Positions 21,803 to 30,800 of a stretch of 64,000 bases of DNA are shown piece by piece. The stretch spans positions 2,108,001 through 2,172,000 of the forward strand of contig JBLDXI010000020.1 of NCBI GenBank assembly GCA_047495785.1, written 5' to 3'. The DNA comes from Lepidodermella squamata. Taxonomy: Eukaryota; Animalia; Gastrotricha. The first letter of the stretch is position 1, and each line of letters opens with the position of its first letter. Made by a program: the position numbers and the translations under genes. The notes below the pieces were generated by a model. The model was given only the letters and a program-made list of their open reading frames with translations. It was not told where the DNA came from and made no database searches.

Positions 21803-24800
21803 ATGGCCAGTAGCCTGCCCGTCCAAAGCGGAAAGGTTTATAAGCAGCTAGTTGACGATCAGGTAAATATAGCCGCATATGAAAAATATGAAAAGTGTAA
21901 TGATTACATGGCAATTTAGCAATCATTGGCCCGAGCTATCGAATCTAACAGTTTGTTCAAGAGGAAACCGTCATCCGGCAAAAAAGACAAGGCCGATGCT
22001 AACAAGCAGCGAGAATGGCTTCAAGCTGCGCCATACGAATATCGCAAGCAGAATCCAGTTTTAAACAAGTATTTGTAGTTGATTAAGCAAAGTTAGATGG
22101 ACGCGTGTACCATTTTTCTTATAGGCAGCTGCGCAATTTGGAAGCATTCGCTGATGGCGACCAGTCTACCGTTATTGAAGCCATAAATGACGTTAAGAAT
22201 CTTCCTGATGTTGTGGTTGCGGCCAAGCTATCTTCTGACATTGCTGATAGAATCGCCCGCAGTAGAAAAGAACGTCATTTTACTGAAGTGGAAAACATGC
22301 AGCACGAATTAGCCGCTGTTGCTAAAGTGCGATTTTTTTCAAGTCTCCAAGCATTGTGGCTAATTAAACTTTTACAGAATTGTGAAGATCTTCTAAAGAC
22401 GGAGTGCGCGAGTATCATCGAAAAGCTGTCTGCCGACAATCATGCTGCTGATTGCAAACTATCTGCCATTTCTGCGGATGAGGTAAGAATTAAACTGTAC
22501 CGGGCAAATCATACAGATAGTAGGGTGCTATATCAAATTCACAAAGCTTTCATCAGAATTGGCTTACACGCTTATATTGCATGTTCAGGCTTTGTATACG
22601 CTCGAAATGGGCGAGCTTACTACGTTGTGGAACGATATTCACTCACATCTGAGCCAACACCACATATGGATTGAGGACTTTTACAAAAGTATTCAAGCCA
22701 TTGAGGAGGAGAGATTGAGCTGCATACGCAAAATCTTCAACTCATATGGCGAGACTTTGCGTACCATTGCTCACATGTTACCATACGACTTGCAAAACTA
22801 CTTGGATCATGAGGCTCAAACGATAAATAAAGTAATTCTCAGCAACCGTCGCCAATATGTTGAGCTGAAAGCGCGGCTCTCATTGACCGAGATCATGTTA
22901 GACCGTCGGAGATTTCTCAACTACAATCGCCGAGTTCGATACTGGCGAGAACATCGCATCGAGCAATACGTGGAAGATTTCAAGAAGTACATTGTTTCGT
23001 CTGAGGTTGTTGATTCTGACGAAGTTCGAGTCGCCCTCGCTAGCATTGCTGAGCAACAGCGATTAGCTAACGCTCCTCGGTTGAAAGTTCTGAACGAGGT
23101 CATTTCTACTCTTTCGCCGCCTCAACCGATTGCTCAACCTGCTTTGAAGGGCTCGGGATCCCCAGTCGTCGTGATGCAACTTCAACAACAGCCAATGCGG
23201 CCCCAAGTTCAAGCACTCTCGCGAGAATTGAATGAACTGAATGGCAAAGTAGATGTAACTAATCAACAAGCTTCCACCATTCTGGGAGCAGCTCATAATG
23301 CCATTGTTCAACGGTGCTTCGACCGAGTTCAATCGATCAGCCGAACGTTAGTTGAATTCGGAGCTGCTTCCGATGGCGATGCCGAGCGAATTTGTCACCA
23401 ACGTTTACTGCCGTATATTGCCGATTTACAGCGGCGTTTCGAGGGCGACATGACTCTTTTCGATCGTTTAATGGAAAAACACAACTATGAAAGCGTGAAA
23501 GAAACGGATGCGTTGATGAGATTCCTGCTTGGCGCGGCGACCTGTTGGGACGATCACGAGCTTGAGTTGTCGAAACGTGAGCGAAATCTGGATGAGAGAT
23601 TACTTTCAGTTCGTCAAAACCATGACGCTCAAATTCAGCGAAACGAAGCTAGGTTAGATCGAGCTTTGGATAAACTTCGTCAATCTGGGAACGCCGCTGC
23701 CCTGCAGCAAAACCTCGCTGCGGCCATGAAACAGTTGGACCTGATTAAAGACGGTCACGAACTTTTCTACCGCGATACTAGCACTCATATTCGAACCTTC
23801 CCAGACAAAGTCGCTTCGACTGTGAAGAAGTATGAAAAATCACTTTTCAAATACATGTTGATTCGACGCCAACCGTTGACATCTGCCGATCAAAACAAGG
23901 CGAAAGTGAAAAAATCGAAGAGTATGGCCCACACCCAGGATGGAAAGCCATTATTGGCTTCGACTATGTCCTCAGCTCGGACTAAGAAAAGCGATTCACC
24001 TGTGGTCGGGGAGCCCGAGGAACCCTTAACCAGGCGGTCCTCAAATGCTTCCCCTACTAAAAAGACCTTGAGTCGAGAAAATACTATGGGATCATCCATG
24101 TCAATCAAGCTACCCCCAGTTCAAGACGAAACCGCCCCGCCGGCTCCTCCTCAACCCGCTGCGCCGAAGAAGGAGAAGAAGGATAAATCAGATTCTAGTG
24201 ACGATGAAAACATCACCGATCGAGCTGACGATGACGAAGATGAAGCTGATGTTGTCGCAGAGTTGTCGCAAGATGCGTCAGGCCGCAGTTACCAGGTCGT
24301 TGTCGAAGAGGTGATGAGAACTCGCGGCGGCGATATGCTCTACGTACTAGCCAGATCAGACGATCCTGATATTCAGAAAATGGCCGCGGCTGAGAGCCAT
24401 GACGAATCAGGCGAGCCACCAGAAAAGCCGCCAATTGATACGGGAGATCAATTTGATCAACCTGTGTTTGTTACCGAGGATGAATTAGCTCGATTTGACC
24501 TCAATCAACCTCATTTGGCTTCATCAGCTGTTCCTAAAGAACTTTTCTTGGATGTAAAGAAGCGGTAAATTTTAGTGAATATTTCAGCAAAAACCTGTTT
24601 AATTTGATTTGATTTTTTAAAGTGTGAGGGCAAATTTTGTCAATCATTTGGAGCAATGGTCTGTTGGTATGCGAACTCGTGCCAAACAAATTTTACAGTC
24701 GAAGGTAATATTTCTTGAAATATCAGGTTTTTTTTTAATTTTCCGCTATTGTTAGATGGAAGAATTGCAATGTGAATATGAGCTCCGGCTGCAACTTCAC

Positions 24801-27800
24801 GCCCCTCGAGCTGATATCATTAAAAAGGACGTTCACGATGTTCGAATGAGCGAACTTCGCTATCATCAACAGCGTGTCGAAGCCCATTGCGCCGGCGCTA
24901 TAGAGCGCCTCGATAAAGTTGGCCACGATTTCGAGAGTCTACTCGTTCAACACGATCAGTGGATAAGCGACTACGAAACTCTCGTCGCGAAATTAACTGC
25001 GAAAATTGAAGAAGTTACAAAATCGGCGAAATTAACTGCCCTCCAAAAGCAGACGCAAAACGAACAGGAACGAACTATGGATTTGGTTCGGACGTCTTTA
25101 CGCGACATGCGGCGCCGTTTAGAAGACACAGCCAATGCGTTACGCATCGCAAATTCTGACTTGACTCGCAATTTTAAGCTCTTTTCTGAGGGTGGTAACT
25201 TCTCGCCGGAGGAAATTGTCGAATTTCGCGAGAAGCTCGACCAGGTCGGGAAGCAAATCGACGAAACTGAGGGTAATATTATGGGTGAGATGGAGGGCAT
25301 TGAAGCGAGACGGTTGAAGCAATGCGCCGCTGTTGTTTCGACCTTTGAGGAGCAATTCAAATACCCAATGCAAGACCTAGTTTTTCTGGAAAAGGTCTCG
25401 CAAATTTTTACAAATACGCAATGCAAAGTTAAGGCGGAGGCGAGTGAATCTAACTCAATCTCACTTCATCTGAGGCAGTTGGTCGAGCGGTTAGAGCGAC
25501 GCCTTGATGCGGTGATGAAGCCTAATTTGGATAAGGAGCAAATCGGCGCGAATGAGGTTAATATAAGCCTGACTGAACTCAGCGATCTTTGCCGGCAACG
25601 AGCGGCTTATCTGGACTGCCAATTGCCCCCGCCTGCTGTTAGCCAGGCCGCTGCGAATCAGCAGCAAGCAGCTGCGTTGGGCGTTGTCACCTCCTTAACG
25701 GCTTCTGTGACTAGTTTAGACCAACTAACCGCCCCGCAACCGATGTCGTCAGTTGCGCCGGTTAAGAAGGAAAAACGCAAGAGTCGAGCTGCGATTCCGC
25801 CCATCAAAACTTCAACGACTTTGACTACGGCTACTAACCCTGTACCCCCTACACCGGTGCCAGTTGCAGCCCCGGCGCCGGCCTATACTTCGAGAAATAA
25901 TAAGGAAGTCGAATCTTTTGCGACTATTCGAGCTTTATTGGCGTAAGTATTTTTATTTTTGAAAAAAATGATTTTATTATGAAAATGACGTGGCTCGTGA
26001 TTTTGTTACCTCCTACCCCAACTTCCCGAGATCATGTGCCACGTAATCAAATCGGATCGTGTTGGTAGCTTTTCACCTTTTCGCGGCAATCTGCCGCCTT
26101 CGCTCGATTTATTGAGCCGTCTTAAATTGCCTTTTAATTTGATTACTACACTCGGCACTTTTGGCTTTGCGTTGACATCCTCAGTCTCATCGCCTTGCTC
26201 CTGTATTATCGCTGATTGAACCATTTCAATGAGCTGATTTTGCCGATTGCTTGTCGCTAGGAGCGATTCCAGTCGCCCGATTCGGTCGGGTGAAATTTCG
26301 CTGCGACCCACGACGAAGCAACAGATCAGCAAAATAAACCTATTCATAATAGTAATCCTATAGGACAGTTGAAATTCGTGAAATATTTAAAAATAATTTA
26401 AGGGATTAGGACTGAGAATTTATATAGCTATAACTAAATCATGATCAAGAGCGGTATATTATATGGCGCTTACTCGAAAAAAAACAGAAAATTTTAATTA
26501 ATAGCTTGCATCGACGGCAAACTTGATGAGGAATCATGTGACTTCCTAAGCGATAAATAAATTGACCTAGGGCCAATTACCCTTGACTAGTGATCTAACA
26601 TCATTTGCGCCTGCGAATCGTCTAAGCTATCGGTAACCCAAGAAAATAGGCTGAATGAGACCATCGTTGTCTCAGATCGATAAAAGGTGTCCACTTAATA
26701 GACTAGATATCGACTAGACTCTGAGCCGCGTCGTAATATAATATCGATGATCGAAAATAAGACAAATCGGACTAAATCTGTCAAATCCGTTTGCATCAAG
26801 AGAGAGAGACGTCGGAAAAGGTGGATTTGCTAGGTAGGTAAGTTTAATTAAAAAAACAGTCCTACTTCTAGTGTGACCAAATAATTGTGTTTTTCGACGT
26901 CTTTTTGAAATTTGTGGGGTTTTCACAATAAGCAGTTGAAAAAAATAAAAAATAAAGTAATTATGGAATTCTGTAAAACTTTTTAATAGTTTTCGTCTGA
27001 CGCTAAGTTGTGAAATGTTGCACCGCAACCGGCGCATTTCGTTCCGCCAAACGATAGAAAAAATTCTGACCAGAGAAGAAGTCTTGGATCAAAGGGATTT
27101 TTAGCAGTAAAAAATTCGGTGAGAATGACGTGAAATATTGAGGAGAAAAATTTCGGTGAAAGTATTCTGTAAATTTTCGCATGATTAATTTACTTAGCCG
27201 AATTGTCTGATGTGAAAATACGAATACATTATTGCGAATTACGAATTTTGAAACGTCCATTCTTCGCCGTCCTAAAAACCGGAACATGGAGACGGTATAT
27301 GCAGACGATGAGACGATGCGAGGGGGAAAAATAATTAAAGTATCACTATTTCATTATTTCTAGGGTGAATAGGGGGAAATGTCAGGTCGTCTGCGACAAC
27401 TCGTCCGGCGACAACTTAGACATCGGACTACTCATCCGTCTCGGCATCGGCTAAAATGTCTGAGTTGACATTAAAAATTAATATTTAAATGAATATTTAA
27501 TTTCGGATGAGTTGTCTGATGTCTCAGTTGTCGCGGACGATTTTTCAGCGAAAATAAATATTTAAATAATTTTGGATGAGTTCAAATCGCCGTTGAATTC
27601 CTGAGCAATTCTTTGTTTTAGGTAAGAGTGAGATTCAGTTAATAGAATATTCAAGAATATGCCAAAACTTATTATCACTTTTATAACAAATACCACGCAG
27701 TTGGGCGGCTAATTGAATCACACGTCGCGTCCTCATATTATGTCACAAATTTGCTCCGAAATGTAATGCCTAATCAGACGTCTTTTTTTATCCCCCAAGA

Positions 27801-30800
27801 CGTCTGATTTTTTTGAACCCCCTCCCCCAAAATTTGTTACTATAGAATTGATTTTTTGTAAGTAAATTTTTTTCATTATGTTTCAGTGATGAAGAGCGAT
27901 CAAGACCTCTGCCTCCCATTGGAGCAGCCGCTGCTGCGCCAAAGGAGGACGACAAGAAAAAGAGCGAAGGTTCCAAAAGAGACAAATCACAGGACAAAGA
28001 CGATAAAAAAGGCGCAGAGCAACAGGCCGATGATATCCCCCTCGGCGGAACCGCTGGCGCCATGCGACGCGTCTCGGTCGCTAGTGGATCTAACAACAAA
28101 AACCGAAATCGCGGAAATTCAATGGTCGACGCGGAAGGCAAACCCATCAAAAAGCAACGTCCTTCATCTGGGTAAATTGAAAAATTCCTGAAATTTTGAA
28201 TGCCTTTTATTAATCGAATTATTGAAAAATATAATTAGCGATAAAAATAAGGCGCAAGTTGCGCCGATGGACTATAGACAGGACGGCCATGGCGATCCGG
28301 GCAAGAAAAAGTTCTTGCGCAGGTTCAGTGTTGTGCCGCTATTCACGGCCGTTTATCACCTTTATATAGCTTATTTTAATTTAATTTAATTTTTGTTCAC
28401 TTAGTAGTCACTAGTTGCCAATTATCATTTTCGGTCCTAAATTTTTCCATCAATTTTTAATTTTTTTTATAAATTTTGTACAGCTTATTGGGAAATACTC
28501 GCCAAGCTCGGCTTGAACTCGAAAAGCTGTACCGAACCTTTGGAGTTACAGAGGACTACCCGAATGAAGATTTCAATCTACTCGGCCGGTCGAGAATTAT
28601 GATAAGAGCTGCTCTGGAAGCTCTTCTCCAAGCTGGGGAGACTTTTTACCGGGCAAAAGGTAATTAATTTCGATTTTTTTCACGCGATGTTTCTCACTTT
28701 CGTGATTCACTATGTATGAAATAAAAGTCGAAGGTGAGTTGTCTGAAATTAGGTCACATTTAATTAGGTCTCATCTAGTGCAAGATTTATATTATATACC
28801 AACACAGTAATTTCCCTCTGAATTTTTCCGGTCAAAATCCTGTATAGCTATGTTTGCCTTTGAAATTCAATTTGCCTGCATCCACTGAAATCATTTGTGC
28901 ATGACATGTTCACAGAAGAGTCGTTGACTCACCGCCAAATCGGCCTGCAGCGAAGCATGGCTGCTGCAGCGGCAGCGGCGGCCGCCCGTCGCGCCACCCG
29001 TGAGTCGCATGATCACCATCAGCCGAGTCATCATCGTCCCCACCACCAAAAAGCGCAGAAAAAGCGCCGCATGCGAAAAGGTTTAGCCGTGTCGTTTTCT
29101 ATGCCGAATATTGTCGCTGAATGGGCGGCGAAAAATCATTATAATCACAATAATTATGTTGCGGAAAATAATCACGACAATCACATCGGCACATCGTTGA
29201 ATGCGTTTCACGCGGCCAAATTGCCGCACGTTGTTGCGTTTAATCGTCGCCTGCAAACTTTTGGTTCATCATCGTCTTCATCCTCAAAGCCTAATTTGAC
29301 TAAACCTAAGCCTGGTTTGCTTGCACAATCGCCGTTGTCCTCCAATGTTGTCGTCCTTATCATTTTTGTATTGGTCTTAGTAAAATTGTTGTCGTATTGC
29401 CGCTTTTGTCTAAGATTAATTGATCTTATTTTCCTGATTTTAATATTTTCTATGATTTTTCAGCTCTTCGAATTTCCGCGAAACCTGCTGTTTTGGAGAC
29501 TTTCGAAGACTACAGCGAGATGGTGGTTAAAAGGCTGACATCCTACTGGGACCAGACTCGTGAATATCACAACGATTGTGTTCAAGGTATATTAACAATT
29601 TTCCTATTTCCTTTCCTTTCCTTTCCTTTCCTTTCCTTTCGTAAAACTAATTGTCCATTTTTTACAGAATTCCGCCAGCAGCTGTTCAAGATCGAAGAAA
29701 TCGCTCAGAATTTGCCTGAAATGGTAATCGCCGAGCGCTATTCGCAGCGCATTGAAGCCGTCAGTAGAATCAAGGACGAATTTTTCCGAAGCGCCATGGA
29801 ACTGCAGGAAGAAAACGAGCGCAAAAAATCCGAGAATGAAAACCAGTTGCGACCCGGGTTGGGCCACCCGCAACAGGAGCCTCTCCTAACAGCCCTCTGC
29901 CATGTTGAGGAACAGCGGCATAAGGATTTTGTCAAGCGTTTGGAGCAGTTGCATTCTTCGGCTATGGACGCTCAAATTAAGGAATCGGCTCAGTTCTATT
30001 CAGATCTTCAACGGGATGCCTTTGAACTGCTTGTTTTCTACGACAGCATCATGACAGCCGCCGATATTGTTAAAGGAGGTTGGTCTACAATTTTTTTTAA
30101 ATTCGAAAACTTTCGAGGAATAATTGAAAAATTGAAAAATTTCAAAATTTCAAAATTTCAAAAAATTAAATTCCCTTGTCTTTGAAAAAATATGAAAATT
30201 GGGAAATTTAAAAAAATATTTAAAATTAAAAAAAATTGAATTTAATTTTTTGTGAAATTTTCTGGAAAATTGTTGAAATTTTTTTGAAATTTATCAAAAT
30301 TTTAAAATGAAATTGAAATATTTCAGAGGTTGTCCAGAGGAAATTGCCGACAATTGCGTTGATTCACCGCACCCAACAGCTGCTTGTCGCTGATTCTACG
30401 GCCTTCAACCAGGTCAAAGCTTCGTTGGACGTAGTCATCAACGCTAAGCCAGACACTGCCGGCGACAGTGCCGAGCTTAGCGGCCCGCGAAATTGGCCGC
30501 CTCTGACCACAAACGGCGATTTACTGCCCAACTTTTTAATGGCAAATCGCGCCCAATTGAAGGCCATTCTCGCGCCGCTTCACGTGAAAACCGACCACGC
30601 CACCCTTCCGCAGCATGCTGTTATTCGAGCTCGAGATGGCCTGGGTCAAAAGTACAAGGCCAGCGTCGAACAGGTTGTAGCCGACCTCGAGGCGTTGTAC
30701 GTCTACATGCAGGAGACGGAGACGAAATGGTTCGAAAAATGGCTGCGATCTGTTGAAAGCGTTCGCAAGCTTTATCAGGTCCAGGGTGTTCGAGCGGCAC

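Follow-up and report, generated by a model that had tools for sequence, protein, structure and literature searches.

Organization of the locus

The DNA analysed here is a stretch of 64,000 nucleotides (nt) from the gastrotrich Lepidodermella squamata (assembly GCA_047495785.1, contig JBLDXI010000020.1, positions 2,108,001 to 2,172,000), referred to below as the window, and its subject is a small gene on the minus strand at 26006-26347. The gene is a 113-residue ATG-to-stop open reading frame (ORF) whose N-terminus reads MNRFILLICCFVVGRS and whose C-terminal end is TWHMISGSWGRR-stop, and the minus-strand frame as a whole reads MNRFILLICCFVVGRS...LPTRSDLITWHMISGSWGRR-stop. It is a real gene, a compact and unspliced unit, and most probably lies antisense inside a 1.9-kb intron of a CCDC180-like gene. 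Its C-terminus is WHMISGSW-G-R-R-stop, with a single copy of the W-x6-W motif placed at the very end, and among the open segments of the window in all six frames it is the only one (n = 1) that contains W-x6-W-G-R/K. The gene is probably a transcribed, dispersed copy within a lineage-restricted family of eight single-exon genes, each of which would encode one Wamide resembling the myoinhibitory peptides (MIP, also called allatostatin-B).

The features of the gene and of the host exons on either side are given below in window coordinates; X1 and X2 are the public sequencing runs described in the next section.

26006-26347, minus strand: single-exon ORF of 113 residues with its stop codon at 26006-26008, from the sequence, the X2 differences and the X1 contigs
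26419-26426, minus strand: TATA-like box TATATAAA, 79-72 nt 5' of the ATG, with a putative promoter function
26300-26347, minus strand: predicted signal peptide, residues 1-14 or 1-16 (MNR + FILLICCFVV + G-R-S), with a putative cleavage site
26018-26056, minus strand: predicted mature peptide SDLITWHMISGSW, residues 98-110, putatively cleaved after monobasic Arg97 (26057-26059)
26009-26017, minus strand: amidation and trimming signal Gly111-Arg112-Arg113, in which the Gly is invariant in 8/8 family genes and is followed by one to three basic residues and a stop
25978-25973, 25957-25952 and 25939-25934, minus strand: three AATAAA polyadenylation signals, the last of them antisense inside a host exon
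22559-25942, plus strand: upstream host exons, with DUF4455 at 22559-24568 (Pfam E 8.6e-73) and a GTAAGT donor at 25943
27887-30185, plus strand: downstream host exons, with DUF4456 at 29493-30185 (Pfam E 4.2e-28) and a cag acceptor at 27884-27886

The N-terminal leader has a mean Kyte-Doolittle value of 3.56 over residues 4-13, taken as a hydropathy proxy for a signal peptide. The AlphaFold model of the mature chain shows helices at residues 20-52 and 97-109 and no globular fold, with a mean predicted local distance difference test (pLDDT) value of 56.7 and a predicted template-modelling score (pTM) of 0.20, and this absence of a fold suits a propeptide. The original prediction, made from the letters of the window, had described a TATA box, a 113-residue ORF and an AATAAA signal as one compact unit with a leader and a single terminal W(X6)W-Gly-basic copy. 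The unit is borne out by the sequence and by the X1 contigs over the ORF, the terminal copy stands as it was described, and the leader agrees with the hydropathy proxy in this gene and in 8/8 family members. A splice at AG|GTAACA, which had been raised as a possible disruption of the stop codon, was not seen, and the X1 contigs are colinear through that codon.

DUF4455 and DUF4456 both lie on the plus strand, one on either side of the nested ORF (the exons were assessed singly), and this domain pair suggests that the host is a CCDC180-type ciliary gene. The donor at 25943 and the polypyrimidine-cag acceptor at 27884-27886 are predicted to keep the frame from one set of host exons to the other, which would place the ORF antisense within the intervening intron. 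According to the X1 contigs, the 3' end of the nested unit overlaps the final ~20 nt of the host exon. X1 depth resumes in the bin 27749-27945, and further GT..AG joints follow downstream.

Expression and selection

Two public runs (n = 2), X1 and X2, cover the locus, and both were examined as contigs. X1 is a 2015 run labelled 'RNA?', so that its RNA nature is a guess; it behaves like RNA, with GT..AG joints of 51 (at 24702/24754), 161, 804 and 81 nt between host exons, and its depth is zero over 26370-27748. X1 contigs match the nested unit at 25924-26057, where two alleles are present, and at 26028-26304, and they extend to 25924 without a joint. The depth of X2 is even across all bins, as expected of DNA. 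Because contigs give no strand, we infer transcription of the nested ORF from the minus strand on the basis of the ORF and its signals. Over 24468-29479, X1 also contains palindromic loose ends and many joints between 'opposite strands', and these joints look like chimeras of amplification or assembly rather than biology.

The X2 contig that spans 26028-27301, from a second strain, was compared with the window. It carries 12 differences, six of them within the ORF, and in the ORF frame all of these (6/6) are synonymous, the corresponding counts in the other five frames being 0, 1, 5, 1 and 1. If the six changes are independent, the probability of this outcome is ~1.5e-4 to 5e-4, and the pattern of substitutions shows that the nested ORF is under purifying selection. 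A 3-nt deletion allele at 26009-26011, found in both X1 and X2, converts the terminal GRR to GR and leaves Trp-Gly-Arg-stop. The deletion allele carries linked changes in the 3' untranslated region at 25954-25961, and both alleles occur in X1. The divergence of X2 is patchy: it amounts to ~3-6% in host-gene contigs (24756-25942), and 6 changes are packed into 77 nt of the nested ORF against 0.6% over the remaining intron. Mosaic haplotypes or gene conversion, in an animal that is mostly asexual, may account for this patchiness.

A family of eight single-exon genes

Six-frame and profile searches of the genome, followed by reading of the loci, identified eight single-exon genes, namely the nested ORF and seven paralogs. 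The original prediction had treated the nested ORF as a lone hidden gene, and in this respect it does not hold. The paralogs are located as follows (C20 is the contig that carries the window).

C20:1814476-1819230, minus strand: six tandem paralogs, 289-294 kb from the window gene
C41:92051-92389: eighth family member, on another contig, with a profile E of 0.066 and confirmed from its ORF

Across the nested ORF and the six tandem genes, family profile E-values range from 4e-35 (the nested ORF) to 3e-16, with a best score of 127 bits. Each member consists of one open frame of 85-119 residues, and a hydrophobic h-region with a mean Kyte-Doolittle value of 2.5-3.6 over 10 residues is present in 8/8 members versus 21% of background ORFs. 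In all eight, strong conservation is limited to the C-terminus, which reads W-H-x-(I/F/L)-x-x-(S/T)-W-G; between this motif and the stop stands R, RR, RK, KK or RKK. Invariance is confined to the initiator Met (in the seven-member alignment), one Gly, Trp103, His104, Trp110 and Gly111. A DNA pattern for this motif gave 12 matches genome-wide versus 1 for a reversed control, which exceeds chance, and 8/12 are the family genes; the four extra matches, on C9, C13, C21 and C42, fall outside the family.

The closest paralog of the nested ORF is the cluster gene C20:1817177-1817473, with 34% identity, and the two share the blocks Q-L-I/V-E-M-V and P-x-x-P-x-V/I-x-I-K. In the wider family, a mid-chain block R-P-x-V-P-x-x-I-K is partly conserved in four or five members. 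Synonymous sites are saturated in all paralog pairs except one recent duplicate pair, for which the ratio of nonsynonymous to synonymous rates (dN/dS) is 0.57. This saturation indicates that the copies are old, yet every ORF is intact. An AATAAA or ATTAAA signal lies within ~100 nt of the stop in most paralogs, and a TATA box comparable to that of the nested gene was found in 1/7. The tandem cluster has the same architecture and motif as the nested gene, which differs from it in being dispersed, outside the array, and antisense in the CCDC180-like intron.

Relation to myoinhibitory peptide precursors

The same contig carries canonical MIP-type genes.

383-895 and 1841-2489 of C20:198000-205000, minus strand: open segments with MIP-type peptides

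These belong to two adjacent multi-exon genes at C20 ~198.4-200.5 kb, which encode six W-x-x-M-E-x-S-W-G-K/R-K/R peptides between dibasic sites and, judged by these repeats, are classical multi-copy MIP-type precursors. Since such genes are present, the lineage has MIP and the nested ORF is very probably not its MIP ortholog, and the earlier suggestion that the animal might come from a lineage lacking MIP falls away with these two genes on the very contig that holds the window.

Shared between the nested gene and MIP/allatostatin-B are a secretory leader, an acidic spacer and a Trp-x6-Trp core with Gly and basic residues right after it. The W-x6-W-Gly-basic core is present in the nested ORF and in 7/7 paralogs. 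The multi-copy, dibasic-flanked layout is found in the canonical MIP genes and is absent from the nested ORF, which has one copy behind monobasic Arg97. At the level of residues, the local MIPs and the family share Trp1, a hydrophobic position 4, Ser7, Trp8 and Gly9; unlike MIP, the nested gene has one peptide at the C-terminus, an invariant His2 and a predicted upstream cleavage site that is monobasic or absent in the family. Homology of the precursors outside the motif is not demonstrable.

Direct comparisons with the MIP genes were made at the levels of profile, protein and spacer. In hhalign, the last 17 columns of the family aligned with the first MIP copy (85% probability, E 6e-6), and these are motif columns only. 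In BLASTP, the shortest member (paralog c5) matched MIP exon 1 at E 1e-4, with leader, L-F-D-E-D-x-D spacer and peptide aligned. Shuffle tests of the spacer against MIP exon 1 gave p 0.001-0.003 for three members; the matches are acidic low-complexity runs, and the similarity of the spacer to MIP is therefore counted as weak. MIP exon 1 is composed of a leader, an acidic spacer, the first peptide copy and G-R-K-K-R. Because the addition of a stop after these basic residues would yield the architecture of the family, descent of the family from MIP by truncation is plausible. The family has the look of an offshoot of this genome's multi-copy MIP genes in which each gene encodes one peptide.

Other single-peptide precursors provide further points of comparison. 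Drosophila sex peptide and DUP99B are likewise encoded by single-peptide secreted precursors with a Trp-rich, MIP-like C-terminus, a likeness that amounts to functional analogy only. They carry W(X8)W, act on the MIP receptor SPR, contain a disulfide, are not known to be amidated, belong to the male seminal fluid and are known from drosophilids alone. A reading of the nested gene as a sex-peptide-like seminal peptide was dropped, as the animal is not an insect. The spiralian single-copy Wamide precursors likewise hold one C-terminally amidated Trp peptide each. Their CCWamide, prohormone-3 and nemertean CP3-r groups are defined by conserved cysteines, and the predicted mature peptide SDLITWHMISGSW has none. 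A survey of spiralians names the three groups and describes MIP as broadly distributed in lophotrochozoans (PMC8557429). A sister-group relationship of Gastrotricha to flatworms has been reported (PMC11660948), and no study of gastrotrich neuropeptide precursors was found in the literature searched.

Proposed processing and receptor

A possible maturation route can be proposed for the precursor. The leader would route the protein into the secretory pathway, presumably of neuronal cells, and would be removed near Gly14 or Ser16. A convertase could then cut after Arg97, or alternatively at the dibasic site Arg88-Lys89, which lies nine residues N-terminal of Arg97. A carboxypeptidase would trim the terminal Arg residues, and an amidating enzyme would turn Gly111 into the amide of Trp110 to give SDLITWHMISGSW-amide, an MIP-like Wamide that may signal through an MIP-type or related peptide G-protein-coupled receptor (GPCR).

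The conserved Asp of D-x-x-x-W-H is preceded, at a distance of one or two residues, by an Arg or Lys in each of the three closest paralogs, and a basic residue at this place points to cleavage after Arg97 and to SDLITWHMISGSW as the product. The amide of SDLITWHMISGSW, already among the products of the original prediction, best fits this comparison of paralogs and is the best-supported candidate. Three other members have a single Arg or Lys right before the Trp, which predicts 8-residue peptides. In this route the N-terminal cleavage is the least secure step. At the other end, paralogs and alleles differ in how many terminal basic residues they carry (R, RR, RK, KK and RKK, and the RR/R allele pair), whereas Trp-Gly is constant, the pattern that trimming of the basic residues and use of the Gly for amidation would produce. 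The computed [M+H]+ values of the C-terminal amides are 1531.736 for SDLITWHMISGSW, 2313.181 for the N-extended GEKLPTRSDLITWHMISGSW, 1041.527 for WHKIADSW, 1028.495 for WHSLAETW, 984.469 for WHAIADSW and 1460.714 for DVIMWHLFAGSW.

Amidating and convertase machinery for such a route is encoded in the genome. A PAM-like gene with a PHM domain and NHL/PAL exons lies on the minus strand at C20:2592500-2596500, and ten matches to the convertase P-domain (P_proprotein) were found. The top Cu2_monooxygen match was of DOMON type (DBH-like) and was not counted as the amidating enzyme, the locus with PHM and NHL being taken instead. Among the Cu2_monooxygen matches, ~25/39 are clustered at C13 ~1.99-2.36 Mb, and one gene of this cluster (517 residues; L035:1132-2685) has Temptin_C fused to both copper monooxygenase domains; the cluster is an unusual expanded family. 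On the receptor side, nine Srw-type GPCR exon matches were found in the genome. A two-exon Srw-type peptide GPCR candidate lies on the plus strand of C54:4131899-4135453, at 1330-2148 and 2141-2716. The best Srw-type exon, from this contig, had no relative in a word search at E up to 1e-5, and its matches were confined to generic GPCR clusters in the Atlas and to a motilin receptor, weakly matched, in PDB.

Interpretation

The family is not detectable outside this genome. No Pfam family was matched by the nested ORF, no relative was returned by word searches with the single protein or with the family alignment, and the family profile found none among 1.84 billion protein representatives at E up to 0.001. 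Metagenome scans with the alignment A3 and with the motif DNA pattern likewise gave no relative. A short precursor with ~10 constrained residues can escape such searches, and failure of detection elsewhere is not the same as absence. The WH-Wamide family appears to be lineage-specific.

Several observations weigh against the reading of the nested ORF as a transcribed Wamide gene of this family. The X1 and X2 contigs carry neither strand nor transcript ends, and X1 is RNA only by a guess. Four of the six synonymous changes are crowded into 17 nt and could stem from a single event, in which case P becomes ~0.02. Relatives are seen in this genome only, and the likeness to MIP precursors is made up of the peptide motif and the weak similarity of the acidic spacer. 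The N-terminal processing site is monobasic, its position is not conserved, and one paralog has no nearby basic residue. An MIP-receptor ortholog was not identified among the Srw-type exons by word search, Atlas or PDB. As for the location in a CCDC180 intron, put forward in the original prediction, the DUF4455/DUF4456 pair and the in-frame splice sites agree with it, while none of the read joints listed spans 25943-27886.

The members of the family could instead be small secreted proteins of non-neuronal kind, of exocrine, pheromone, defence or adhesive-gland function, in which the resemblance to MIP is convergent and the chain of ~95 residues is perhaps never cleaved. The weak and inconsistent N-terminal processing sites would fit such proteins, as would the R-P-x-V-P-x-x-I-K block, a mid-chain element in four or five members, and the tandem array, fast divergence and lineage restriction of the family are traits typical of secreted effector-type genes. 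However, the invariant residues are confined to the terminal Wamide-type motif, all of the ORFs stop one to three basic residues after the invariant Gly, the Trp1, hydrophobic position 4, Ser7, Trp8 and Gly are common to the genome's MIPs, and no fold is predicted, so that a non-neuronal secreted protein is rather unlikely. It is very improbable that the animal's MIP/allatostatin-B ortholog is this ORF, reduced to a single copy, as the original prediction implied: a W(X6)W-Gly-dibasic end on a leader-bearing ORF is what such an ortholog would show, but the two canonical multi-copy genes at C20 ~198.4-200.5 kb are better ortholog candidates, and seven paralogs of the ORF itself exist. The strandless contigs, the guessed RNA label of X1 and its chimeric 'opposite strands' joints could also be taken to mean that a chance open frame in the intron is covered by retained host intron or by contaminating DNA. 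This is scarcely credible in view of the zero X1 depth over the other 1.4 kb of the intron, the 6/6 synonymous differences and the eight paralogs that are intact despite saturated synonymous divergence.

Along with the reading of the gene as a member of a Wamide family, a more far-reaching proposal may be considered tentatively, and it is doubtful at this stage: the eight WH-x4-(S/T)W-amide genes would form a separate signalling system, derived from a truncated MIP exon 1 and spread as single-peptide units, in which His2 sets a distinct receptor specificity. If this were true, the family would represent a gastrotrich-specific radiation of Wamide ligands and receptors. A bolder version would hold that the copy antisense in a motile-cilia gene, overlapping the end of a host exon, is co-regulated with ciliary gliding. 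The simplest view is that the gene lies antisense within a ciliary gene by coincidence, and it is speculation to connect the peptide with its ciliary host.

As a member of such a Wamide family, the nested gene would belong to a case in which a multi-copy peptide family has been rebuilt as many one-peptide genes with the classical form kept alongside. It would be a natural case for the study of neuropeptide precursor birth and of how ligand diversity tracks receptor diversity, and the family supplies concrete peptides with which receptors of this emerging model animal could be deorphanised. These results leave the distribution of MIP as it was known, and the kind of gene is ordinary.

Remainder of the host intron

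Beyond the nested unit, the rest of the host intron (26400-27886) held only unsupported ORFs and short repeats. An inverted repeat at 27408-27534 has arms of 31 nt that are 90% complementary, with 65 nt between them, and may be what is left of a small foldback element.

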